A stretch of DNA of 63,836 nt, filler included, from Lenisia limosa (Eukaryota > Protista > Breviatea): the NCBI GenBank assembly GCA_001655205.1. It is 12 parts of 12 records of this genome, joined end to end, with 100 filler letters (N's around TTAATTAATTAA, not from the genome) between each part and the next. Parts side by side here need not be neighbours in the genome. Positions count along the whole stretch, not along the records: positions 17,466 to 32,779 come from LPNZ01011396.1; 11 more parts are not named here. One strand, written 5' to 3'. The notes beneath the pieces are model-generated. The model made no database searches and had not been told where the DNA came from. It saw only the letters and a program-made list of their open reading frames with translations. The position numbers and the translations under genes are program-made. This document shows positions 17,313 through 32,944 of the stretch, one piece after another. Each line of letters starts with the position of its first letter. Within the stretch, counting starts at the first letter, position 1.

Positions 17313-17799
17313 CAACGTGGGCTCAAGGGCATCTGATATTGGAGGTTCATTCGCCCCGCCCCCCCNNNNNNNNNNNNNNNNNNNNNNNNNNNNNNNNNNN
17401 NNNNNNNNNTTAATTAATTAANNNNNNNNNNNNNNNNNNNNNNNNNNNNNNNNNNNNNNNNNNNNGGGGGGGGGGGGGGGGAGGTGAAACAGAAAATTTT
17501 GATAAAGAATTAACAAACCCTTTGGGAAACACTTATACGACGACTACAAACTGAAATCAGCTTGTACCCTTTTGTTCAAAATACCTGATGTTGGAAAGCC
17601 TTTTGATAATAGACAACTATGGTAGATATCTAGTATTTAATCTTGTCCATCAATGAAAACATATTAACTATATATTAACAAATGAACATCTCAATAATAG
17701 ACAAAGTGCTATGAATTATAATTAAATCCCAAGGGACACAAAAGAAGAGGTTATAGGATAAGAAATAAATCTGTTGATCAATGAACAGTGATGGGATAT

Positions 17800-17967
17800 T
17801 TGAAAATGCTGGTCCCACATACGGAGAATTTCCAATCAAAGGTAACCTCTTTCATGTCGGGGAAGTCAGTGGGTGGTTGGCAAGAATGTTCAGATTGTAC
17901 TTGCTCGCATCTTCGGAAAACTGCCCGCTACTAAGAGCAAGACTGCAAACAAAGACAAAAGCCTCAT
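17800..17967 (-). CDS. Hypothetical secreted protein, 5' fragment
   Basis: MRLLSLFAVLLLVAG signal-like start and PTDFPDMKEVTFDWKFS before a GTATG donor; head-to-head with LUC7. Confidence 0.35.
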
Positions 17968-18122
17968 TTGCATCGCTAAAAAAAGTGATTTCTTGTCTGC
18001 GCAAACCTGTAAAATTATAATTTAAATATGCGCGTGGTGCGCGTCCTTTTTTATTTGGAGAATTTTTCAATTAAGACCTCTTTTGTACTTAAAGTTGCAG
18101 AACTTGCCGTATAATCGACAAA

Positions 18123-21100
18123 ATGGATAACAAATCACTCTTGGATGAGCTCATGGGCAAGGTGGGTTTTTCTTGTCAAGTTATATCCCCTACTTGGCGG
18201 CTTCAGTGCTCTTACATTGTTAGGATATGGTCTAATTGAGTGTAGGACAGAGACCTCCTCCCCGACGAAATTGTTGAAAAGGTCATTGATTTCATGTGAG
18301 CGTTGGGGCCTTCTACGGACTGTTTATATATATGTAATGGAAATAGAAAGAGAATTAGGCCACATAATTGGGTTAATGCGTCTCTAGGGACCGTAAGTTC
18401 TGCTCAGGCTTCCTGCTGGACTGCTGTCCCCACGACATGTTCACTAACACCCGTTCTGACCTTCGTGAATGCCCAAAGATCCATTCCCAGGACGCGGTTG
18501 ACGAGTAGGCTTCCCCCAATAAAACGAAATATATCTGGTTTTCTGTTGTGACCCAAGATATAACTCCTCTCTCCGACCAACAATGTTGTTATTTGCGTAA
18601 CTATGTGTTATTTTTAGGGTTATTGTGGAATGGAATCAGGTTTTAATCAGTTTTTTTTTTNNNNNNNNNNNNNNNNNNNNNNNNNNNNNNNNNNNNNNNN
18701 NNNNNNNNNNNNNNNNNNNNNNNNNNNNNNNNNNNNNNNNNNNNNNNNNNNNNNNNNNNNNNNNNNNNNNNNNNNNNCCCCAATTAAGCGTGATATTGTA
18801 TTTTGTATATATGGTGACCTCCCCTCCGTGATTAGTGCCTTTCTGCCTCTGCAGAAGCGACTAGCCTGGGCTTTGTTTGTTTTGTTTGTCTGCTAACAGA
18901 GTTAATTTTTTGTTGGTTTTTATTTCATACATTCTCTTTCACCCCCCCCCCCCCNNNNNNNNNNNNNNNNNNNNNNNNNNNNNNNNNNNNNNNNNNNNNN
19001 NNNNNNNNNNNNNNNNNNNNNNNNNNNNNNNNNNNNNNNNNNNNNNNNNNNNNNNNNNNNNGGATGCTATCCCCTACCTCGAGAAAATGATCCGCGACGC
19101 TGATAGAAAGTGGGGCGGGGGTAGAAATGGGATAGAAAATGTAAATATAAAAATAAAAAAACAAAATCGTAATAGCAATATTGCTTTTAGCATAACTCTA
19201 ATTAAACCTAGGGTTGCGAGTAACAAATTCCGCCTTGACGATGAGTTCCACAACATGCCAGTGACTCTCAACGAGGATTCGTAGGGAGGAGGGTATTGTG
19301 CTGTGCTTTGGTCGGAGTTTCAATTGTTTTTTTTTTTGTTTTTGTTTTTTTGATGTTTTGCNNNNNNNNNNNNNNNNNNNNNNNNNNNNNNNNNNNNNNN
19401 NNNNNNNNNNNNNNNNNNNNNNNNNNNNNNNNNNNNNNNNNNNNNNNNNNNNNNNNNNNNNNNNNNNNNNNNNNNNNNNNNNNNNNNGGCTTGGCTTCAC
19501 TTCGGTCTGAAAAAGACCGGTAAATTATCGATAATTTTCGAGGATTTATCGAAAAATTCAGTTTTTTTTTGAACCTAAGTGAAACCCTACCCACATCCCG
19601 GACACACATCCCCATTGTTTGTTTGGAGTCCCACCCCATTGTTTGTTTGGAGTTTCAGATTATTCGCCCCACCCCATTGTTTGTTTGGAGTTTCAGATTA
19701 TTCGTCCCACCCCATTGTTTGTTTGGAGTTTCTGATTATTCGTTCCACCCCATTGTTTGTTTGGAGTTTCAGATTATTCGGTTCGTGATTAGTACCTTTA
19801 CGCCAATATTCTNNNNNNNNNNNNNNNNNNNNNNNNNNNNNNNNNNNNNNNNNNNNNNNNNNNNNNNNNNNNNNNNNNNNNNNNNNNNNNNNNNNNNNNN
19901 NNNNNNNNNNNNNNNNNNNNNNNNNNNNNNNNNNNNNNNNNNNNNNNNNNNNNNNNNNNNNNNNNNNNNNNNNNNNNNNNNNNNNNNNNNNNNNNNNNNN
20001 NNNNNNNNNNNNNNNNNNNGGCCGAGTCTATGGGAGAGGAAGGCGACGTGGAAGGCGCCCGCAGAGTGGGGGGATATGTGGCTGTGTGTGTGTGGGATAT
20101 TTTACCTTTTTACGAGTTGATTCTGAGTTTTTTTTTTTGTTTCGATAGCTCCCTTTTTACTAGATGGGGTGCGGTGAAGTGGGCCTGGGCTTGGTTTGTT
20201 TTGTTGTTATCAACCCTTGTGTGTTGTCAACCAACAGAGTTGATTTGGGTTTCTTTTTTTATTTATTTCATAAATTTCACCATTTTACCGCCTCCCCCCA
20301 GCGCATGGCAGAGGTTGAGCGCATGATGGCGGCCGATAAGGAGGTACAGCGCCGCATTGAGCAATCTCTTGAGGGCTACTCCCGCCTTGAGTCACAGATG
20401 ATGGTGGGGGGTTGCTGGTACAGGCTGGATGGGAGTATTATGGTAATTTGTTTTCGGTATCCCTATATGTAATTAGATAATTCTTGCCCTCTTCTGAGTT
20501 TTGATTATTATGAGAGAGGGGCTTATTTGTAGTTACAGATTATTTTTCGGTACGCGCAATGCTCTTCATTAACTTGACTCTGTTTTTCTTCTCTTTACAC
20601 CCAGAGTCCTTTCTCTTGTTTATCTTCCCTTTACAGCAGGTTGCTTTGTTTTACGCCCTTTTAGGTTTGCGACGTTTGCGGTGCCTTTGTGATGGAGGGT
20701 GACCACAAACGTGTGGAAGCTGGAAGAGAGCATGGACTTGGTTGGGGGGGGGGGGGCTTTTNNNNNNNNNNNNNNNNNNNNNNNNNNNNNNNNNNNNNNN
20801 NNNNNNNNNNNNNNNNNNNNNNNNNNNNNNNNNNNNNNNNNNNNNNNNNGCAACTTTCTTTTGGAGAAACTAAACGAAGTTTTAACAAGTTTCTTTGCCA
20901 CGTGGTCGTGTTTTCTCTGTTAACTCCCTAGAATCCTTGGACGACAAACAATCTCGCCACCTTGCCCATATTGGAGGTATGAGAGTTTTTTTTTTTGGAC
21001 CGAAAGTCCAGTTTGTTTCATACCCCCAGGAAAGGTGCATTTAGGCTACGTCAAGATCCGCCAACGCCTAGCTGAGTTCCAGGAGTTTATCGAGAAGCAA

Positions 21101-21316
21101 CGGTGGGGGTTTATCGAGAAGCAACGGTGGGGGTTTATCGAGAAGCAACGATGGGCGTTGGGCATTGGGCTGCACTTCAGTTCAACAGTCCGTTAATATA
21201 TCGATATTCATCAAGGATTTATCGAGAATTCAGTCATTTTTTTGTAACCGCAGGGAAACCCTAGATAAAATGGTTAAGGGGGGCAGTGCATACACACACA
21301 CGCACACACACACACA

Positions 21317-21363
<47 letters not shown>

Positions 21364-22474
21364 CCTCTCTCTCNNNNNNNNNNNNNNNNNNNNNNNNNNN
21401 NNNNNNNNNNNNNNNNNNNNNNNNNNNNNNNNNNNNNNNNNNNNNNNNNNNNNNNNNNNNNNNNNNNNNNNNNNNNNNNNNNNNNNNNNNNNNNNNNNNN
21501 NNNNNNNNNNNNNNNNNNNNNNNNNNNNNNNNNNNNNNNNNNNNNNNNNNNNNNNNNNNNNNNNNNNNNNNNNNNNNNNNNNNNNNNNNNNNNNNNNNNN
21601 NNNNGGCTTGTATTTGATCATGGGGTTAGGGTTGTGAGTTGTCAGATTATGACCTTCGAATCGGGTGTATAGTGTGGTATAACAAGGGTTTTTTTGACTC
21701 CTTCCCCTCCCCCCTCCCCCAATAGGGGGCCAAATATGCCCTTAATAAGGTTCTTTGTCTTACTCTTTGCAGGGACCGCTACGATGACGATGATAGGCAT
21801 CTCAGAAGAGAAAGGTTGGGGATGACGATGATAGGCATCTCAGAAGAGAAAGATTGGGAGGGTAATGTTATACCTATGTATTTATTGTTTCCCTAGATTT
21901 CTAATGCATGGAAACAAATATGGATACAGGAGGGGGTATGGAAGCAATAAATATTCCAATTTTACGTTATTATGAGTGTCCATTACTCACCCCCCATAGC
22001 TCCAGCCGATACGACGACAGAGACCGCCGTGACCGTGACAGAAGTGATCGGGACAGAAGTGATCGGGACAGAAGTGACCGTGACCGTCGTGACCGTGATA
22101 GATATGACAGGCGCGACCGCGACCGCTATGATGATCATAGATCATCTTCCCGGTTTGGGGCTTTATTTGCGTTGATATAAGATATCATTTTGGTATTGAT
22201 GATTTTGTGATATGCTAGGTTTCAGAACGTTATATTGTTGACCATTCTTCCCATAATATTGTAAATAGGGGTTCTCGATAAATCCTCGATAAATATCGAT
22301 ATTTTACCAGTCTTTTTCTAATCTTAGGGTGCAAAATGACACCTTCAAATAACAGATATTGGTATTTTGTGATATACCTGAAATTATTGGCTGGCAATAT
22401 GATATACTGGTCAATGTTTTTTTTCAAAACAGACCTGACCCCTCAGGTCCAGCAGCCGCAGTAGCCGCTATTAG
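18123..22474 (+). CDS. LUC7: U1 snRNP-associated LUC7-like protein; multi-exon
   Basis: MDNKSLLDELMGK, DRKFCSGFLLDCCPHDMFTNTRSDLRECPKIH (zinc finger 1), AESMGEEGDVEGA, VCDVCGAF..HLAHIGGKVHLGYVKIR (zinc finger 2), and an RD/RS-rich tail ending RSSSRSSRY*. Confidence 0.92.
19597..19785. repeat. Intronic minisatellite, ~38-bp unit x ~5
   Basis: Unit CCCACCCCATTGTTTGTTTGGAGTTTCAGATTATTCG, immediately after a MITE-A copy. Confidence 0.9.
20176..20300 (+). repeat. Repeat family C: sense-oriented intronic element near 3' splice sites (type copy)
   Basis: Consensus TGCAGAAGCGACTGGCCTGGGCTTTGTTTGTTTTGTTGTTATCAACCCTCGTGTGTTGTCAGCCAACAGAGTTGATTTTGGGCTTTTT..CCCCAG; 13 or more full or partial copies in the window (see findings). 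Confidence 0.85.
21290..21373. repeat. (CA)n(CT)n microsatellite
   Basis: Direct observation; abuts an N gap. Confidence 0.95.
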
Positions 22475-22805
22475 TTCCCAATGTATTGTTATGTTTCTTG
22501 TATCCAAAACGGCTGTTAGGTTGGGAGTCTCAGATATATATCTATATATATTATATATATTTTGTTACAGGAGGAGTTGAGAGGAGTGCAGGAGGAGGCT
22601 GAATCAGGATAAGGGGACGAAGGAATGAATGACAAATGAAGGGGCCATAAAAGGTAACAACTAAATATTTTGAGAATTGAGTTTGAAATTGAAAGAGGTT
22701 GCTGTTCTGTTTTTGTTGTTATATATATATATATATATATATAGATATATCTATAAAAGAAGAAAGAAAAGAGTGAGAGACACACAGAGGAAAGAAGAGA
22801 GAGCA

Positions 22806-23925
22806 ATGATCTCCATCCCCCTGCTGCTCTTCAGTCTCTCCTGCGCCCTCCTTCCCTTAACTCAAGGCTTCATCTACTCAGTGCCCCAAGGGACCGTGAT
22901 CGAGGCCTCTTCTGTCACTACGGACGAACTCATCTCCAATCACATCACAATTGGCCACTTGAATTTCACTGATGGTTCCTCCAGTAAGAAGCTGTTATTG
23001 ATTAACTAACTTATGATGATGATTTGGGGGACGGGTCAAATTAAATCAGGAATAAGAAATAAACAACAGACAGAAAGGAGTTGAAATGGATATTTAAGAT
23101 TCTGCTCATAACTCACAACTCATGCTCTTTGGTGCATACTGCAAGTGTGAAACTGTAAAACTCCTTATTGAATATCTTTTAAACCCACAATGGGGCAACA
23201 TGCGATGCTTGATAAATGTGACAATAAGACATGGTATCGACAAGTGACCCAACAAGCAACAAGCAACATATTAACTCTTTTACTTGTTTTAGTTATAATT
23301 ATCACTTTGTTTTATTTCACACATCTAAGTATCTACCTTTTAAATAATATCACCGTTTTTATAACAACATAAGCGCAGAAAAACCATTGTTTTTTTGTAT
23401 TTTGCAGCCAGATTAACCCTATACGCATAATTAGCCCTGCGAGCTTGGTTGGGTGAATTATTTCTCCCATAATTCAATATCTCCTATAAACGTGATGGTT
23501 TGGACATCTTCAGGCAGATGCAACGTATTTTTACATCATACATGATTAACTCGACAGTGACCACTCGCGGTGCCTCTTTGGCCGAACTTGACAACCTGGA
23601 TCGTGGGCTCGAGGATATGAGTCCTTGATGATAAGTCTTGACCGATATGGAGATTTTCGTTCAGAAAAGTTGCCAACTTTCCACAGTTAATGAATATTTT
23701 CTGATTTTTTAATGAATAATTAGGGTGGAGACAGGTGGTTATTTATGGAAAATTTCATGAAAACAGCCTTTTTGTGCTTGAGGAAGTTCAACCAATAACA
23801 CCGCAGAAAGACGTGCAATTCCGATGCGCTCGCGCCACTCTATGACCCTCAATAACGGCCTGGACGATTGGAATATGTCCGGTAACCTCGACTGCAACAT
23901 TACCCTCAATGATACCGTGGGGAGG
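22806..23925 (+). CDS. Hypothetical secreted protein; first exon clear, later exons tentative
   Basis: MISIPLLLFSLSCALLPLTQG signal peptide + FIYSVPQGTVIEASSVTTDELISNHITIGHLNFTD; later coding-like stretch MTLNNGLDDWNMSGNLDCNITLNDT ending at GTGGGG. Confidence 0.4.
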
Positions 23926-25854
23926 GTAGGATCGATTAATTGTTGATTCGTTTTTTACGTAAACGAGGTTGCATTTTCGTATATTAATACTTTTCTCACC
24001 GAAAGTTTTTGATTTAATCACCAAAAATTTTATATTTCTATTTATTTCTTTATGATACTCTTTTCAAAGAGATTACAAACAAATATAATCTTAGCATACA
24101 GAAAAAACTGCGCAAGGATTAGCATTCACTAAATTAATGAATTCTCTTGTTCTGACCCAATAGTATTATTATTATTACCCTTTTTTACATGATAGGTTGT
24201 TATTTCCCTCCTTCTAATGAACAGGTTATTTCCGGCCACTTGCCAACTGCTCGTGGATATACTGGTTGGGGATGGGGATAGAATATAGTATAACTAAGGC
24301 GTCACTTCGTTTCGGGGAAAATGTCGATAGCTAATGAGGATTTATCGAGAAGTTCAGTCTTTTTTTTCGAACCGAATTGAAGCCCTAGTATAACCAAATG
24401 AAAATACTAGTTATTATACGTTTAATTGCGTAAGCTTATTCTACATCTCTGTATAATGAAGCTGAATCATTTTAGTCAGAGCTATTTTCATCAATAGATA
24501 TTATATTTAAAATATTTTTTAATTGGTTTTCTGTTTAATTGTTCGATTCTTTGATTGTGGCGTTTAGCTAATGAGCTCTTGGACTATCTCGGACGTAATG
24601 TTCAGCATCTCTTTTCGTCTTTTTCAGTGGGGGGGGGGTGACAACTAGGGCTTCCCTACAGTCCCAAAGATAACTTAATTTCTCGATAAATCCTCGATAA
24701 ATATCTAATACTTTATCGGTCTTTTTCCGACCATATAGAAGCCCTAATGACAACTTATCGTCTTATTCAGAATGGTGTGTTATCTGGTATGTACCTGGTT
24801 ACGCCAACATGGAAAATTGGCCTTTTTCACACCCAGAAGTACCTTAGGGCCCCTGTTTAAAAGTGTACCTGGTTACCCCAAACACACCTATTTAAAGAAA
24901 AGACAAGAATGAACAAATTAGAGAGAAGAAAGAAACTTGAACGCAGAAAACGAAGAGTCTACTAGAAGCATAAACTTAAATAGAGAAACAGAAAGCCGAA
25001 CACTTTTCAACACAACACAGAGAATAGAATTCCCACTTTAGCCTGCTCCTTTGTGGTGTCCAGCTGAATTGGCTCATTAGGACTTGGGCTTGAAAGGCCC
25101 ACGTCTCAACGAGACCTGAACAGACAGCGCGTCAAAACAAGAAGCTGACTCTCGGCAGCGATGGGCAACAGTTTGCTCTTATTGGCAATGACATGGGCAA
25201 CAGTTTGCTCTTATTGGCAGTGACATGGGCAACAGTTTGCTCTTATTGGCAGTGACATGGACAAAGGGATACTCTGCTATTCGTAAAAAGGTCCATGGGA
25301 TAAAAATTTCGGGTGGGGTAACCAGGTACACCCAAAACCGAGGTATCCAGATGCTTTTAGTTGGGGTAACCAAGTGTACTTTTCTATGTTCTTTTGCCAA
25401 CGTAAAGCCCCTTAACCACTTCATCTTACTTCCCCATATGCACATTCCACTTTTTACTTCCCCATATGCATATTCCACTTTTTACTTCTTCTCTTTTTCA
25501 CCCCCATAAACCTGCCACTTTTTATCTGTCTTCACCCCCAAGATTTTGGGCGTTTTTGTTTAATAAATTTTCGAATTTTACTCCCCTAGATCTACCATGT
25601 AATTTGCGACCGCCTACCTGGCAAATCGTACTACCACATTGGCCCCCAAACCCAGGTACACAATGTAATGATCGGATGAACCTCCAGTATCATATCACTT
25701 GCAGACCTTGGATTATAAGTAGGGCTTCCCAACGGTCCCAAAAAAGATTGAATCTCTCTATAAATCCTCGATAAATATCGATATTTAAACGAAGCAGGGA
25801 AGCCCTAACTATAATCAAGTTGTTACAAACCTGAGGAATGAGGGGGAAAATACA

Positions 25855-25935
25855 TACAGTGACCGGGATAAGACTTGACTTATTTTCCTTGGGAAATCAT
25901 AGAGCAAATCGGTTAAGACTTATCCCGGTCACTAT
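25855..25935. mobile_element. MITE family B (~80 bp, TA-CAGTGACCGGGATAAGTCTTGACC..GGTCAAGACTTATCCCGGTCACTG-TA), Tc1/mariner-like ends
   Basis: Near-perfect TIRs with TA flanks; copies at ~31715-31797, 39590-39645 (partial), 50285-50365, 55411-55492, 58843-58924, 62273-62337. Confidence 0.85.
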
Positions 25936-26019
25936 ATATCTTGGAGCCTCCAAACCCGCTTTCTATCGATATATCATGCTATTTACAACCTCATCTTCAA
26001 TATATATGTCCACCCCAGA

Positions 26020-27870
26020 CCTCAACTTACACCCCTGTATTTACCCCCTTGTTCACCCCGCTGTTCCTGATATACGCTGAAGTGATGAACTGCGGTGCTG
26101 TAGTGATGGGATGTTGTGCTGCAGAAGCAGCTGGGCTGGGCTTTTTGTTTTGTTATTTTCCCGTAAATGTTTAGCCAGCAGAGGTCCTTTTGGTTTTTTT
26201 TATTATTTCATTGATTTGTCCATTTTACTTCCCAGATTCCACGATACGACCAGTACACAATCACATTCGGATACGCTGTTAAGCTCCTTGCTGACGACTC
26301 CAATGTCTTGTTTTCTGATGGTGGGGGGGTAATGTTTCTGGGGTTGGGGTGGCTTGGGCTTCACTTCATTCGAACAAAGACTGGATTTCTTGATAAATTC
26401 TTGAAAACTGTCGACATTTTCCCAGTATTATTCGAACCTAAGTGAGGCCCTTTTATTCCTCATAGTGTACGTAAGTTCGTGATATTTTGTTTTCTCAGTA
26501 CCATTCTGAAATCTGACCGACAATGTAGGCCCCATGACAAAGGCCGTTTTGAACGAGTGGACTATTGCGTATGAAAAGGAGACCCAAGGCGACAAGGGTG
26601 ACGGTGACTTCGGGGGGTATACATACCCTGCGTCTCACAACTACGTTGGAACTCACGTGAGTACGGGGGGTAAACGGAGGAAATTTCGATGAAGAATTTT
26701 GGCCAAAAGCCAGATGACAAAAACACAAAAACAAAAACAAGCCCGGTAAATTGCACCTTTCTATAAAGGTCACTGGTTTTTAACGCAAAAAGGAATTACT
26801 ATTCTCATAATAGTACTTGCCAACTTCAATAGGCTAGATTCCTTGTCAGTGGGCTAGATTCCTTATCAATGGGCTGGATTCCTTATCTTAATTATCACAT
26901 TATTGTAAGTCATAGTTGGTTTCTTCCTATTTGCCTCCACTGACACAGTAGGTTGAATATCTCTTTGCACTTCCTATGGTTGTGTTTGCTGACATCGAAG
27001 TCACCCCCAGAAACTGGTATGTTTATGCTGTAACAATAACTGTCTACACTATCATGATGGGAATTAATATTATACTATAATTCAATATCTCTTATAAGCG
27101 TGACCAGGTACAACCTTATTTTTTATTTCCTATTGCTATATAGATAATTATGTTTTTATATTCACTTTTGTTCCTATTCTTCACATTTCCCCCGCCCCTC
27201 AACTCGAATATTGATTAGAGGTGGTTCCTAATTGAATATCTCCTATAACGTACTAAAATCCAATATCTTTATAAGCGGGACGGCTTCGACCAGATACAGC
27301 CTTATTTTTCATTTCCCATTGCTATGATATATTATATGTAATTAGTAGTATATCAGAGATACCACCTTTATTTCTCACTTTAACTACAGGTGGTTCCTCC
27401 CCATTGCGGACATGAAAGACGCAGTTTAACTTGCCCCCCTCCTTACTGATTTTTTATTTGTTTGCATTTATTTTGTATTAATCATTTTTTTAATCTTATT
27501 AGAGACGACCTAAACAAGATCATTTTTTTTACCTTCTATCTTCAACCATCTCCTTTCTCATCCCATCACGTGATTACAAACGGCATAGGGGCTACCCCCC
27601 CCCCCCNNNNNNNNNNNNNNNNNNNNNNNNNNNNNNNNNNNNNNNNNNNNNNNNNNNNNNNNNNNNNNNNNNNNNNNNNNNNNNNNNNNNNNNNNNNNNN
27701 NNNCATACATAAATAAAAACAACACAGCTTTCACTTAACAGTCTACCGTAAGACTACCATAATGGATACAAAGATCTCAAGTTCACTCGATCTATGATCA
27801 AATCCATTTTGCTCGAAGCCATTTGGCCACTGTTTTCTGACAATCCGGGGTAATTTGTTCCCGTACGGTT
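26020..27870 (+). CDS. Hypothetical protein, exon chain of unknown function
   Basis: In-phase exons IPRYDQYTITFGYAVKLLADDSNVLFSD|GPMTKAVLNEWTIAYEKETQGDKGDGDFGGYTYPASHNYVGTH|VEYLFALPMVVFADIEVTPRN|WFLPIADMKDA; a further candidate exon reads GYKDLKFTRSMIKSILLEAIWPLFSDNPG. Confidence 0.5.
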
Positions 27871-28084
27871 TGGATAACCTAAACTCAATAAATGCGATTT
27901 TTTTGTTAAAAAAACGTCAAATAGAGGATATCGATTGTCTAATTAACAGCATTCATTTGGGGGTTTCTCTACATTCTAGCCCTATGATGTGTTATTTGTC
28001 TTCACTTCGGTTCGAAAAATACCGGTAAAATATCGATAATTTTCGTGATATCATAAGATAAAAAAACAGCTACCATCACACCTC

Positions 28085-28220
28085 ATCCCGTTGGAAACTT
28101 AGTACAAAGTCCGCGGCCGTATCCACGGTGGCGTCGTCAACAATATCATTTATAAACTGGTCCAAAAGCATCTTTCGGGCGTCCCGGTCTTCTGGAGTGA
28201 GGGAGGGAGGCGGGCCAATC
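28085..28220 (-). CDS. Coding exon of unassigned gene
   Basis: CAG|IGPPPSLTPEDRDARKMLLDQFINDIVDDATVDTAADFVLSFQRDE|GT. Confidence 0.4.
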
Positions 28221-29319
28221 TGGTAGGGTTAATAATGATGATAATACTGTTTTTGATTATGATATAATATATTGGCAGTGATGATGATAAGAACAAAAAG
28301 ACGAGTAGTGTTAATGATGAAGATGTTGGTGAGTTGGTGACGATTGTTGTGTCCGATCAAGATTGTTGTTGACGATGGTTGTGCAATATAAAGACGGTAT
28401 AAAGTGGCCTGATTTGTTGATGTTAATGATAATGTTGTGAAAGAACAGCGCCAATCAACAACTATGTTATAATGTTCAGTCGGGATGTGTGTGAGGGGAG
28501 GAGGGGGGGGGGGGGAANNNNNNNNNNNNNNNNNNNNNNNNNNNNNNNNNNNNNNNNNNNNNNNNNNNNNNNNNNNNNNNNNNNNNNNNNNNNNNNNNNN
28601 NNNNNNNNNNNNNNNNNNNNNNNNNNNNNNNNNNNNNNNNNNNNNNNNNNNNNNNNNNNNNNNNNNNNNNNNNNNNNNNNNNNNNNNNNNNNNNNNNNNN
28701 NNNNNNNNNNNNNNNNNNNNNNNNNNNNNNNNNNNNNNNNNNNNNNNNNNNNNNNNNNNNNNNNNNNNNNNNNNNNNNNNNNNNNNNNNNNNNNNNNNNN
28801 NNNNNNNNNNNNNNNNNNNNNNNNNNNNNNNNNNNNNNNNNNNNNNNNNNNNNNNNNNNNNNNNNNNNNNNNAACGAAATTAAAATTGGAAAATTTCAAA
28901 ATGATGCATTGTATAGACCAACTGAAAGTGAAGGATATCCGAAAATTTCAAGGCCCTATTTGAAGGCGTTATATAGTTTCAGTAATTGCTTTGCTCCATT
29001 GGAAGCGCCTAACCTGTACCTTCTTGTTCCAGGAAAACCAACATTCATCCTTCAGTTTCTGAAACTGCTGAATTCAGAAGAGCCGCTCAGATCTTAGATT
29101 CTGGTGAANNNNNNNNNNNNNNNNNNNNNNNNNNNNNNNNNNNNNNNNNNNNNNNNNNNNNNNNNNNNNNNNNNNNNNNNNNNNNNNNNNNNNNNNNNNN
29201 NNNNNNNNNNNNNNNNNNNNNNNNNNNNNNNNNNNNNNNNNNNNNNNNNNNNNNNNNNNNNNNNNNNNNNNNNNNNNNNNNNNNNNNNNNNNNNNNNNNN
29301 NNNNNNNNNNNNNTACTAA

Positions 29320-32300
29320 AGCCCGTAAAATTCTTTGTTTTAGAACGCGGAGAACAAGTGGTGTCAATTCGTCCAGGACAGGTAGGTAGTACTCATATAT
29401 TGTTATCTTTTAGATCATTGCGACAAAGGATGAAAACCTGATAGAGCAAGAAATGCCGCACCCAACAAAGGTGGAATTCTTGGGCCAAGCGATAAGACTG
29501 TCACAAAGTTGAAGGAAAAGAGGAACAATAAATCCAAAAAGTAACTGTAAATATATTTTGCAAAAGTGAAGTGGTTGAGATTGAAATGGACAAAGGGCTT
29601 TTTGGGAGGGAAAACAAAAAAAAGACACGATATCGAATAAATGACAAGGTTTCTGCGCAGCAGCATTTCTTGTCCTTTCAAAAATATTTCTGTTACTGAA
29701 TGTGTTTTTTAATACATTTTTTGTTCTTTCAAAATATTTTGTCTTTTAAAAACTCGACACTTAGAATCCCTTCGCCATCAGATCCCACGTACTTTAGAAC
29801 ATACAGCACTCACACGGTTGGCACACACAAGGTCAAGGCATATGAAGTGAAACGCATTACAGCATACGTCAAAGCTAGAAGGGGTCAAAAATGCACTAAT
29901 TTAGCGCCGAATTGCATCGATAACCACATCATACCCCCTTCATACCCGGGGTTCCCATCTTCGTAGTCAGATGAAACCGTGGGTTTGACAGCCTCGTGGA
30001 ATAGCCTTTCTTGGAACTCAACTGGCTGAAATTGTGATGCTTGTTGACGGTAGTTACTGATGATGATGATAAATATGATGACGGTGAATGCTGCTGTTGA
30101 TGATGGTGTTGTGGTGATGATGACGGAAGTGACTGCGATGTGGTGATGAAGAAGAGTGGTGGTAATACAATGCGCAGTGGATGATGCTAATGCTGGTGAT
30201 AATGCTGATGTTGATACATGGTAGTGGTGATGATGATATGTATCCAATACCTACTTTGGTCTTAACACAGGGCAAGCACGGACCTTTTGCAGTGGACACC
30301 TATGAAAGTAAAAAAAATTTGCAAAAAAAAATTTGAAAGTAAGAATTTTGATGTAAAAAAAAATTGACGACTTCTTCACCACTTTTACAATAGACTTCAC
30401 ATCACCCCACTCTTATGTTTTACTCTCCCCACTTCGATATGCTTCACAGGCCTCAACACAAGGCCCTCAGCAGTGTTATTGGCCACTTTCTCAAGACCAA
30501 ATTGAGCCGACACACGACTTTCAAACCTGAGACGTGAATTGTATAGAGATGAGGATAAAACAAGGTTGTATCCGGCCAAAGCCGTCACCACGAGAGATAT
30601 TTGATTATAGAATAATATATTAATCCATACATTCAGCTTTCTGTGTGCAGCATACAGATTAATGGAGTACTTTGCAGTTCTACACACCCTCTTCCTACAT
30701 ACTTATTTGATAGCTCCAACACCTTAGTCCTGGACGCACGGAGAAGAACGGGCGGTGTCATTAAATCTTTAGTGGATAAGTAAGGAATTAAAAACACTGA
30801 ATGAAACGTAACACTTTATTGTAGCTAAGCCTTCCCGTCAACCAAATTTCTCGATAAGTGTGGAAAGTCTGAAAGGCAAAAGTAATGCACATTATTCAAC
30901 AACAAAATTCGGTTTTATTTCACAAGGAGGTTAGAAAGGGCAATGATGTATGACTTCTCATTTTGCTTCAGATTTAATCATCCCTCAAACCATGAGTTTT
31001 GCATAAGGCTACAGTTTCATCATGTCCAAGAAACCGAAGAGAGCCTACAATGGGTGACTAGGAATGCCAATGAATTCAATGGAAGTACCTACAATTTTGA
31101 TTGGACCACCCGCCTGTAACCCACCATCACTGAAGACGCCAACATCGAACACGCTCCACGCATAATGTGGGCAGTAGTACACACCGGTTTGCACAGCAAC
31201 TCGCTCCGAGTCTGAATCAATAACGCAACAGAAATAGAAATATGTAATATTAAACCCAAATAGGATTAGAAATTGGAATATCTAAGAAATGTTTATCAAG
31301 ACAGTAGAAGGTGTCAAAATGTTTTACGGATATTGTTTATAACTAGGAAACTACGGTTTCGGACCGCAAGAAAACTAGCAAGGTTTCCAATCGTAGAAAT
31401 GAGAAACAAATTCATAGTATCTAATCTGGTTAATATATAGCAATGAGAAATTCAAAATAAGGTTGTATCTGACCGAAGCCATCCAATTGGACTATAGTAT
31501 GCTATTAATTCACCCATCATTTGCCTTATAGATTATAGCAAACCTTGGTTCGGATACGATCCACCAAAAAGCTCCCCATAAAAGTATACCACGGAATGGG
31601 TTGGAAACTCGGACGCAGCATTGATCAGACGATCCCGGTGATCTGCCGCGATCTGTGCAGTGAAGCACAATTCAGTGATATCAGACGGATAAGTCTTGAT
31701 CGATTTGCTGTGTGATAGTGACAGGGATAAGTCTTGACCGATTTGCTCTATCGTTTTCCAAGGAAAATAGGTCAAGAAGATTAATCCCGGTCGGTGTATT
31801 GTATTATTATAATTATAGAGCATATAATATTGAAGCACACACACATATACATATGATAGTATATGCATATGATATATAGACGTATTTAGAAATGAGAAAT
31901 AAAAAATAAGAATGTATCTGGCCGAAGCCNNNNNNNNNNNNNNNNNNNNNNNNNNNNNNNNNNNNNNNNNNNNNNNNNCAAAGGATACGACCACCCACCT
32001 GATTGACCTTGTAGAATGCAGGCTGTTCCGACTCAAGAAGCCATGACCCTCTTTTGCCAATTGCCACTATGTCGCCATTTTTAACGACAATCCTAAATAT
32101 CCATCAATAAGCTGAGACAGCAATCTTAATGGACATATGTGGATACAATATTCAAAGCTTGAATACTCAAGAAAACGATGAAAAATATTCACAAGTTCTT
32201 TATATTTTAACGTGGTATTTGTTCACCTTATTCTAGACCCTCATACACAACATTGGATCACCTTATTCTAGACCCTCATAAACAGCATTGGATCATCTTG

Positions 32301-32436
32301 TTCTAGACCCTCATAAACAGCATTGGATCACCCTCTATCAGACCCCCATACACGACATTTGAGCCATGGATTTTCTCAGTTGCGACCCAGGTGGCCTTGT
32401 TGAGCGCTGACGCCTCTTTTTGCGTACACTGCCACC
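29320..32436 (-). CDS. ATP-dependent RNA ligase, Rnl2/kinetoplastid-REL family; multi-exon, both ends uncertain
   Basis: Motif I WVATEKIHGSN, Ia AIGKRGSWL, III YFYGELFGGSYP, IIIa VQTGVYYCPHYAWSVFDV, IV FGLEKVANNTAEGLVLRP, V CVKTK|PVEFQE, then ANR. All appear in the correct order with GT-AG joins. Confidence 0.85.
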
Positions 32437-32944
32437 TGAAATACCGTTGATAACAAAGCCCAGGCCANNNNNNNNNNNNNNNNNNNNNNNNNNNNNNNNN
32501 NNNNNNNNNNNNNNNNNNNNNNNNNNNNNNNNNNNNNNNNNNNNNNNNNNNNNNNNNNNNNNNNNNNNNNNNNNNNNNNNNNNNNNNTCAGTTCTATTAT
32601 ATATAGGGTCCCAAAGATACAGAATTTCTCGATATTCTATTGGACTTTTTCAGACCGAAGAGACGCCAAAATTATATGTCATATCTACTATATGATTTGA
32701 TATACTTGAGTAGATACAATCAATGACTTCACTTTGGTTCCAAAAACTCGGGCAATACAATACCAATACTCTCCCACCCNNNNNNNNNNNNNNNNNNNNN
32801 NNNNNNNNNNNNNNNNNNNNNNNTTAATTAATTAANNNNNNNNNNNNNNNNNNNNNNNNNNNNNNNNNNNNNNNNNNNNACATGTATGATAATATATGAT
32901 ATAGTATATATATCGTATCCAAAATACCCCCCCGCTCACAATAG

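Follow-up and report, generated by a model that had tools for sequence, protein, structure and literature searches.

Can a dispersed repeat provide the 3' end of an intron? The question arises from 63,836 nt of DNA of the breviate Lenisia limosa (GCA_001655205.1; 12 parts joined end to end, filler included; hereafter the window), in which a repeat of ~100 nt appeared to sit immediately upstream of acceptors in unrelated genes. The sequence-only reading of the window offered three explanations, namely a mobile introner-like 3'-splice-site cassette, an intron-encoded small RNA family or a structured splicing element, on the premise that every copy is in the sense orientation of its host gene. 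Our analyses of positions 17466-32779 (LPNZ01011396.1) lead us to the view, held with guarded confidence, that the repeat is probably the 3' portion of a modular, high-copy, non-autonomous introner-like mobile family, the pyrimidine end of which is a splice-site cassette. We favour this reading mainly because of base-exact splice junctions, together with dispersal in unrelated genes, copy number and a modular, truncated 5' side.

The piece analysed is a fragmented eukaryotic scaffold with about a dozen N gaps, mostly flanked by G, C or T homopolymers, and the family statistics are drawn from ~13 kb of readable genome sequence plus a 3-kb contig described below. Its recognisable genes are LUC7 on the + strand, in which exon 3 matches PF03194 at E 3e-13, a + strand gene that encodes a secreted protein, and at least one gene on the - strand, coding for an Rnl2-like RNA ligase (a weak PF09414 match on the exon downstream of a truncated repeat copy). 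The sequence is contained in two public runs from a single study, X1 for DNA and X2 for poly(A) RNA (labelled 'metatranscriptomic'). The LUC7 exon junctions were set by mapping back onto the window P0001, a 334-aa LUC7 protein from a EukProt Trinity transcriptome. P0001 was retrieved with LUC7 exon 3 in a representative-library search and is 100% identical to the window over that exon. The junctions of the secreted-protein gene were set by one 940-nt RNA contig. Reads were placed on 21650-27600 only, and the junction of intron 20066-20301 thus comes from the Trinity-derived P0001.

Within the piece, the claimed recurrence of the repeat was confirmed at 18846, 20176 and 26118 by BLASTN and a hidden Markov model (HMM), with multi-copy DNA depth at 26118, and the truncated copy reported at 32445 is real and consists of the head and ATCAAC only. 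The copies, and the host intron of copy 20176, are as follows.

18828 to 18954, + strand: copy 18846, with a GTGATTAGTGCCTTT motif at 18828-18842, the head at 18864-18886 and a tail that ends in C13 at an N gap.
20165 to 20301, + strand: copy 20176, composed of a G-rich lead-in, the head at 20183-20205, a middle part and the tail TTATTTCATAAATTTCACCATTTTACCGCCTCCCCCCAG; it forms the last 137 nt of LUC7 intron 6.
20066 to 20301, + strand: LUC7 intron 6, host of copy 20176, reading GTGGGGGG ... CCCCCCAG.
26118 to 26235, + strand: copy 26118, the last 118 nt of intron 25656-26235 of the secreted-protein gene.
32446 to 32467, - strand: truncated copy with exact head matches of 14-15 nt, its 5' side cut by an N gap.

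The three long copies (18828/18849-18954, 20165-20301 and 26118-26235) are collinear, lie on the same strand and are ~72% alike. Their 23-nt head, GCCTGGGCTTTGTTTGTTTTGTT, can be written GCCTGGGCTT(T/G)GTTTGTTTTGTT and is nearly identical in copies 18846 and 20176; a 21-nt head pattern gave two matches at no more than one mismatch, with none expected by chance. In pairwise BLASTN comparisons, copy 20176 matched copy 26118 at 72% over 104 nt (E 1e-9), copy 18846 matched copy 20176 at 96% over 23 nt plus 72% over 76 nt, and copies 18846 and 26118 were 84% identical over 38 nt. An HMM built from the three copies scored these same source copies at E 1e-22 to 1e-39. DNA word depth at copy 26118 is ~1270, compared with ~30 for single-copy sequence (~40x), and the repeat is therefore multi-copy in the genome. 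An independent Logan DNA contig of 830 nt covers 25904-26733 with zero differences; this contig and the DNA depth indicate that the repeat is no assembly artefact. With its dispersal in unrelated genes and its multi-copy DNA depth, the repeat is a high-copy family.

Copy 18846 lies in LUC7 intron 3 or in the next intron, its acceptor being hidden in the N gap; 45 nt of LUC7 coding sequence (LNKKGTDTQKVRLMQ) are absent from the window and must fall in one of the two gaps that flank this copy. The truncated copy on the - strand is ~22 nt long, with a 12-nt deletion relative to copy 20176, and a candidate acceptor of the RNA ligase exon (cag/GTGGCAG; AG at 32437) is found 10 nt beyond it. LUC7 intron 6 also contains a partial upstream duplicate of the repeat middle, at 20114-20142. 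The 5' side of the element varies: a copy may have the head module GCCTGGGCTTTGTTTGTTTTGTT there, the GTGATTAGTRCCTTT module or a tandem array of 38-nt units, and this side readily undergoes truncation or tandem duplication, so that the likeness is confined to the acceptor-side part of the host introns.

Both copies with a sequenced 3' border end on the last base of their intron, at acceptors supported by transcripts. At 20301/20302, P0001 reads ...GARR/RMAEVE..., which places LUC7 intron 6 at 20066-20301. At 26235/26236, an RNA contig joins 25655 to 26236, which gives intron 25656-26235; the RNA depth over the repeat in this intron is zero, and the poly(A) RNA contigs lack the repeat at 26028-26226. 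The U-rich, then C-rich tract said to run straight into the acceptor AG is thus borne out at 20300 by P0001 and at 26236 by RNA, with the correction that 26236 is the first exon base. The similarity between the host genes (LUC7, the secreted-protein gene and the RNA ligase gene) ends at the AG and does not reach into the exons. Were the elements inserted at random positions of the two introns (236 and 580 nt), ends matching both acceptors to the base would be expected with a probability of ~1e-5.

The tail is ordered as TTATTTCAT..ATTT..CCATTTTAC, a C-run and AG, and it contains TTTTAC, which resembles a branch point. Each of the 11 introns with fixed bounds has a yTnAy motif 8-16 nt upstream of its AG; the TTTTAC of the tail lies 9-16 nt from the AG, like the yTnAy of the repeat-free introns of this piece. 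As the repeat-free introns have no C-run between branch point and AG, the C-run belongs to the repeat. With TTTTAC at branch-point range, followed by the C-run and then by AG, the constant pyrimidine end of the repeat is a putatively complete 3' splice-site unit made of a predicted branch point (TTTTAC), a C-tract and AG. C-runs adjoin the acceptors of LUC7 introns 6, 9 and 12, and two further tail-like features were recorded.

21952 to 21999, + strand: LUC7 intron 12 (21815-21999) runs into its acceptor with a short tail-like end, GTCCATTACTCACCCCCCATAG; an RNA joint of GT..AG type skips 185 nt here.
25426 to 25589, + strand: array of tail-like units (CCACTTTTTACTTCCCC twice, ..TTTTTCACCCCC.. 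and ..CTTCACCCCC..), with a 28-nt period according to Tandem Repeats Finder (TRF).

The likeness of 21952-21999 to the tail is weak, having been seen by eye and with a circular HMM only. The last unit of the array, GGGCGTTTTTGTTTAATAAATTTTCGAATTTTACTCCCCTAG, is compact and lies at 25590, where RNA supports the start of an exon; the nhmmer E values of the array with three-copy models, 0.14-0.27, are suggestive only. An HMM of six 'tail' sequences was too heterogeneous for use.

All four head-bearing copies are in the sense orientation of their host gene, a proportion that is not significant. Sequences related to the tail are also found in the opposite orientation, as listed here with the B subfamily that ties them to the repeat.

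19590 to 19812, + strand: B-subfamily element in LUC7 intron 5, with a 38-nt tandem array, GGTTCGTGATTAGTACCTTTAC and GCCAATATTCT (start of a tail), followed by an N gap before exon 6.
26657 to 26746, - strand: antisense B copy starting at the first base of intron 26657-26951 in a + strand gene, the donor being fixed by the RNA contig.
19110 to 19211, - strand: LUC7 intron 4 (102 nt, bounds from P0001); its reverse complement follows the repeat collinearly through middle and tail (..CCATTTCTACCCCCGCCCCAC).
17466 to 17520, - strand: tail copy at the left edge of the piece, with G16 and then AGGTGAAACAGAAAATTTTGATAAAG.

The motif GTGATTAGTRCCTTT is shared by the B element of LUC7 intron 5 and by copy 18846, in which it precedes the head (two matches, none expected), and it ties this copy to the B subfamily. 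Intron 26657-26951 starts with GTGAGTAC-GGGGGG-TAAACGGAGGAAATTTCGATGAAGAATTTTGGC, the reverse complement of a B-type tail, which is followed within 26657-26746 by an antisense head-like stretch (..ACAAAAACAAAAACAAGCCCGG). The end of this element is the donor itself, and the DNA depth of the bin at this copy is ~14,200 (single-copy ~30). An RNA contig that stems from another locus agrees with the window as far as 26703; its next 30 nt are the exact reverse complement of 19772-19801, after which 10 of the following 11 positions agree. By this exact 30-nt link, the B element is sense in LUC7 and antisense in the other + strand gene. The antisense B tail agrees with the tail of copy 20176 at 22 of 26 positions (z 3.2, reached by 4 of 300 shuffles); compared directly with the three long copies under strict scoring, the antisense B copy gives a weak match. 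Judging from these alignments, the wider family is not strand-locked, and the proposal that every copy is sense has to be abandoned, given the B copy at the donor at 26657 and the resemblance of LUC7 intron 4 to an antisense copy.

LUC7 intron 4, the G-run end of which is the donor, scored z 3.7 in antisense against copy 20176, a score reached by none of 200 dinucleotide shuffles, with z -0.3 for the forward control. The left-edge copy, 17466-17520, forms a 46-nt inverted repeat with 18909-18954 (74% complementary; z 6.6 against copy 18846, 0/200 shuffles). On the sense strand, 7 of 15 runs of at least five G lie within 10 nt after one of 17 donors (binomial p 1.4e-8). Many introns of the piece start with GT and a G-run and close with a C-run and AG. 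Because the model of the three sense copies gives only E 0.4-13 for the antisense sequences in the window, we regard LUC7 intron 4, the left-edge copy and the pattern of G-runs and C-runs as supportive of antisense copies, not as proof. An HMM that included antisense copies was discarded as circular.

The suggested comparison of host intron positions with orthologues was made for LUC7, which at 18123-22150 has at least 12 introns for a 334-aa protein. The nearest relatives of P0001 in a homologue search are at most 35% identical to it. We mapped the introns of five orthologues on an alignment with P0001: those of Craigia (plant), Xenia (coral) and Ectocarpus (brown alga), an animal-like one with long introns and an intron-poor one, with no close relative among the five. 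Only introns 1, 3 and 5 of LUC7 have positions in common with the plant, coral, brown-alga or animal-like orthologues. Intron 5, which hosts the B element, shares its position with the animal-like orthologue, and the positions of introns 4 (antisense copy), 6 (copy 20176) and 7 to 12 occur in none of the five. The outcome for the repeat is therefore mixed, with lineage-specific positions for introns 4 and 6 and shared ones for introns 3 and 5. These positions suggest heavy lineage-specific intron gain in LUC7. They place the family in introns of both kinds, lineage-specific and ancient, a distribution compatible with some insertions having given rise to introns while others entered introns already present.

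A scan of GTDB prokaryotic assemblies for the commonest miniature inverted-repeat transposable element (MITE) of the window retrieved one further contig, CBDLPA010000067.1 (L008; 3118 nt). It is a eukaryotic contig with introns, mis-binned in an 'uncultured Colwellia sp.' metagenome-assembled genome from run SRR2018010; the Colwellia bin is contaminated, which hints at an organism living in, or cultured with, a marine bacterial community. A copy of the repeat is present at 2045-1984 on its - strand (E 1.7e-4 with the three-copy model; pairwise z 4.6-5.6), and 25 nt separate the inner end of this copy from a C14 run (G14 when read along the copy). Another tail closes with CCCCAG at 2938 on the - strand. 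This contig counts for the dispersal of the family, not for its orientation. Exact-pattern scans of JGI metagenome contigs for the head and for the MITE core gave no match, nor did a scan of viral contigs or exact look-ups of window ORFs and P0001 in a contig index.

Several observations weigh against the introner-like mobile interpretation. The long copies are just ~72% alike, and few copies underlie the statistics on orientation and position. Copy 18846 is probably hosted by intron 3, which lies within one residue of an intron of the plant, coral and brown-alga genes; since the position of this intron is common to these lineages, the copy did not create it. Neither terminal inverted repeats (TIRs) nor a target-site duplication (TSD) have been demonstrated, and no TSD is evident at introns 6, 12, iC and iE; CCCAG occurs at both junctions of iC, a single case, and the inverted G-run/C-run ends are very short. 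The 5' ends of the host introns share a G-run at most (z <1.5; introns 6, 7, iC and iD). The antisense matches consist of low-complexity sequence, and the short tail-only likenesses at other acceptors could be convergent splicing signals and not homology. At the L008 copy, the strand of the gene is ambiguous, with plausible exons on both strands between which Pfam does not decide.

Among the other explanations, a functional RNA, either a small RNA hosted in the intron or a splicing enhancer structured by a conserved hairpin, appears very improbable. Copy 20176 admits an interrupted hairpin of 13 bp, and its G-rich lead-in might pair with the C-run. This stacked hairpin, which had been proposed as a feature of the repeat core, is nevertheless peculiar to copy 20176 and results from a copy-specific 17-nt tandem duplication (TTGTTGTTATCAACCC x1.9 by TRF; 20201-20232, + strand) that makes its ATCAAC/GTTGAT and TGTTG/CAACA arms and is lacking in copies 18846 and 26118. 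Copy 18846 has no 5' arm and copy 26118 has broken pairs. The minimum free energies of the folds match the values for dinucleotide-shuffled sequence (z -1.0, +0.2, +0.1 and 0.0), and RNAalifold of the alignment gave -3.7 kcal/mol with a positive, unfavourable covariation term. Rfam, searched with the entire piece at E<=1, returned two weak, unrelated matches only, and ARAGORN detected no tRNA or tRNA-like sequence. The recommended check for covariation and for an Rfam family thus came out negative. An intron-encoded structured RNA (snoRNA, miRNA or cis-acting hairpin) was rejected as the identity of the repeat in view of the missing conserved fold, compensatory changes and Rfam match. With no poly(A) RNA depth over the repeat in intron 25656-26235 either, the small-RNA and structured-element options fall away, and the functional-RNA reading is largely refuted here. 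Convergent splice-signal composition (branch point, pyrimidine tract and C-run), or an assembly artefact at homopolymer-flanked gaps, is likewise hardly credible: the short tail-only matches are weak and the gaps are indeed flanked by G or C homopolymers, but a 23-nt near-identical head with ~100 nt of collinear similarity cannot be convergent, and an independent contig assembly gives copy 26118 in its context. For the three long copies this explanation is refuted.

The most serious competitor, which we nonetheless consider rather unlikely, is an ordinary dispersed repeat, or a satellite-like low-complexity module, that inserted into existing introns or grew there by slippage, after which selection would have retained just the insertions with the pyrimidine-rich strand towards the acceptor or the purine-rich strand towards the donor, without creation of introns or splice sites. 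It would account for copy 18846 in an intron at an ancient position, for the ~72% identity of the long copies, which are old, and for a genome packed with other repeats in both orientations, in which tandem duplication is rampant, even inside the repeat and where exons meet introns. If selection acted on orientation only, neither the base-exact acceptor ends of both resolvable copies nor the donor end of the antisense B copy would be expected, and the lineage-specific positions of LUC7 introns 4 and 6 also speak against it. Transposition of introns at the RNA level, by reverse splicing, reverse transcription and recombination, or gene conversion between the 3' ends of introns, would yield copies that are sense only and anchored at acceptors, and the 4/4 sense head-bearing copies fit, as does a constant 3' end with a variable 5' extent reminiscent of incomplete reverse transcription. 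However, a B subfamily with the same tail and the GTGATTAG module lies antisense at a donor, intron 4 is like an antisense copy and 4/4 is not significant, which makes this route improbable. Of the three original options, the introner-like mobile 3'-splice-site cassette fits best, freed from its premise of strict sense-locking.

If the introner-like mobile reading is correct, copies would spread by transposition. In a sense copy, the spliceosome would use the pyrimidine end as acceptor, as observed for two copies; in an antisense copy, the same end would read GT, a G-run and TAAAATGG, at donors, as in one B copy and likely in LUC7 intron 4. Some insertions might create new introns, for example LUC7 introns 4 and 6 at their lineage-specific positions, and other copies might land in old introns, such as intron 3 at its ancient position. 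The G-run and C-run ends of an intron may then pair and draw the splice sites together, and this genome offers a natural test of whether such ends aid splice-site pairing. We propose more tentatively, as a doubtful extension, that the ~50-nt terminal module could be a two-way splice-site cassette, providing branch point, C-tract and AG in sense and GT with a G-tract in antisense. Single insertions or half-insertions could then seed either intron end or capture the ends of ancient introns, and the resulting introns would have G-run and C-run ends able to pair. If true, the two-way cassette would allow introns to be gained and splice sites to be replaced piecemeal, unlike the insertion of whole introners.

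Other repeats abound in the piece, and the genome is rich in introns and laden with transposons. The commonest MITE, of ~90-110 nt, has inverted ends (TAGGGCTTC...GAAGCCCTA) and a TCGATAAATCCTCGATAAATATCGAT core, and it occurs in both orientations, mostly in introns. Its DNA word depth reaches ~69,700 (single-copy ~30), which suggests thousands of copies in the genome. Its copies are located as follows.

19491-19590, 21184-21263, 22272-22320, 24300-24390 and 24646-24746: MITE copies.
25719-25800, 26350-26452, 27996-28050 and 32610-32670: further MITE copies.

Short foldback Tc1-like elements (CAGTGACCGGGATAAGACTTGAC...) are present at 25849-25942 and 31687-31790, with arms 81-90% complementary and a DNA depth of ~24,000. 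A third family (…GGCTTCGGCCAGATACAACCTTATTTT…ATTGCTATA), with a depth of ~21,000, is found in both orientations at 27070-27142, 27221-27325, 30537-30583, 31434-31484 and 31883-31929. Intronic tandem arrays occupy 32223-32359 (35-nt unit, x3.9) and 26826-26887 (20-nt unit, x3.1), and minisatellite-like expansion is common in introns of this genome. In LUC7, exon-intron junctions are tandemly duplicated at 21085-21159 (24-nt unit, x3.1) and 21783-21858 (38-nt unit, x2); the units hold the last exon bases and a donor composed of GT and a G-run, and according to P0001 the first copy alone is used.

Homopolymers of 12-16 nt (G or C) abut N gaps at 18942-18954, 20744-20756, 27595-27606, 28503-28515 and 17466-17481. 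The homopolymer ends of introns and repeats seem to have caused the assembly breaks, with small exons lost in the gaps. LUC7 residues 70-84, 124-140 and 255-276 are absent from the window sequence. The C-terminus of P0001 (residues ~309-334, EIGRHTSELQSHSFISYAVFCLKKKK) mismatches the RD-rich last exon of the window and looks like a chimeric or mis-assembled transcript end.

How does the repeat compare with known systems? In primates, exonization of antisense Alu elements relies on a U-rich strand that gives a polypyrimidine tract and an AG, and one orientation alone yields acceptors. The repeat described here differs in having no pol III promoter, tRNA-like head or A-tail, and its end is a constitutive acceptor, not a cryptic exon. 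A SINE or retroposon origin was rejected, as there is no tRNA-like head (ARAGORN) and no Rfam match, and the constant end is a C-run instead of an A-tail. MITEs with TIRs are likewise small, abundant and intron-resident, and the G-run and C-run ends of several introns look like short inverted termini; however, the MITEs of the window have clear TIRs and lie in both orientations anywhere in introns, whereas the repeat has no demonstrable TIR pair within one intron beyond the homopolymers. Short GC-rich vertebrate introns reportedly carry 5' G-run and 3' C-run motifs able to pair across the intron. The positions after donors and before acceptors are the same here, but the runs are homopolymers of 6-16 nt attached to a dispersed repeat, and any pairing between them is putative. 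Introns of Physarum polycephalum have mononucleotide and pyrimidine-rich stretches that break assembly, with probable intron gain, as in this window, although no such repeat family is described there (PMC4758236).

The closest parallel is with introners, which are known from Micromonas, Aureococcus, dinoflagellates and others (Gozashti et al. 2022, PMC9860276; review PMC11282704) and are likewise short, non-autonomous, multi-copy elements in introns of unrelated genes. Some families carry their own 3' splice site and recruit the 5' site elsewhere, insertions in opposite orientations are recognised (PMC9860276), and introners have been linked to lineage-specific intron gain in aquatic protists. 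As in introners, the similarity of the repeat is intronic, is shared by unrelated genes and excludes the exons, and the repeat supplies a functional splice site and is spliced out. Unlike introners, its copies are diverged (~72%) and modular, with no TIR or TSD demonstrated and at least one in an ancient intron. Fungal introner-like elements were rejected as an identity for the repeat, the copies of which span part of the intron only, with fold z of -1.0 to +0.2. Current introner pipelines demand similarity at both intron ends (PMC12130899), and the repeat, which meets one exon-intron boundary per intron, lacks this two-ended similarity. Bursts of intron gain are at present best explained by introners, the detection of which depends on that two-ended similarity. 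If our reading is correct, half-intron elements that give one splice site, or either according to orientation, would be invisible to such surveys, and both transposon-driven intron birth and splice-site replacement would be under-counted.

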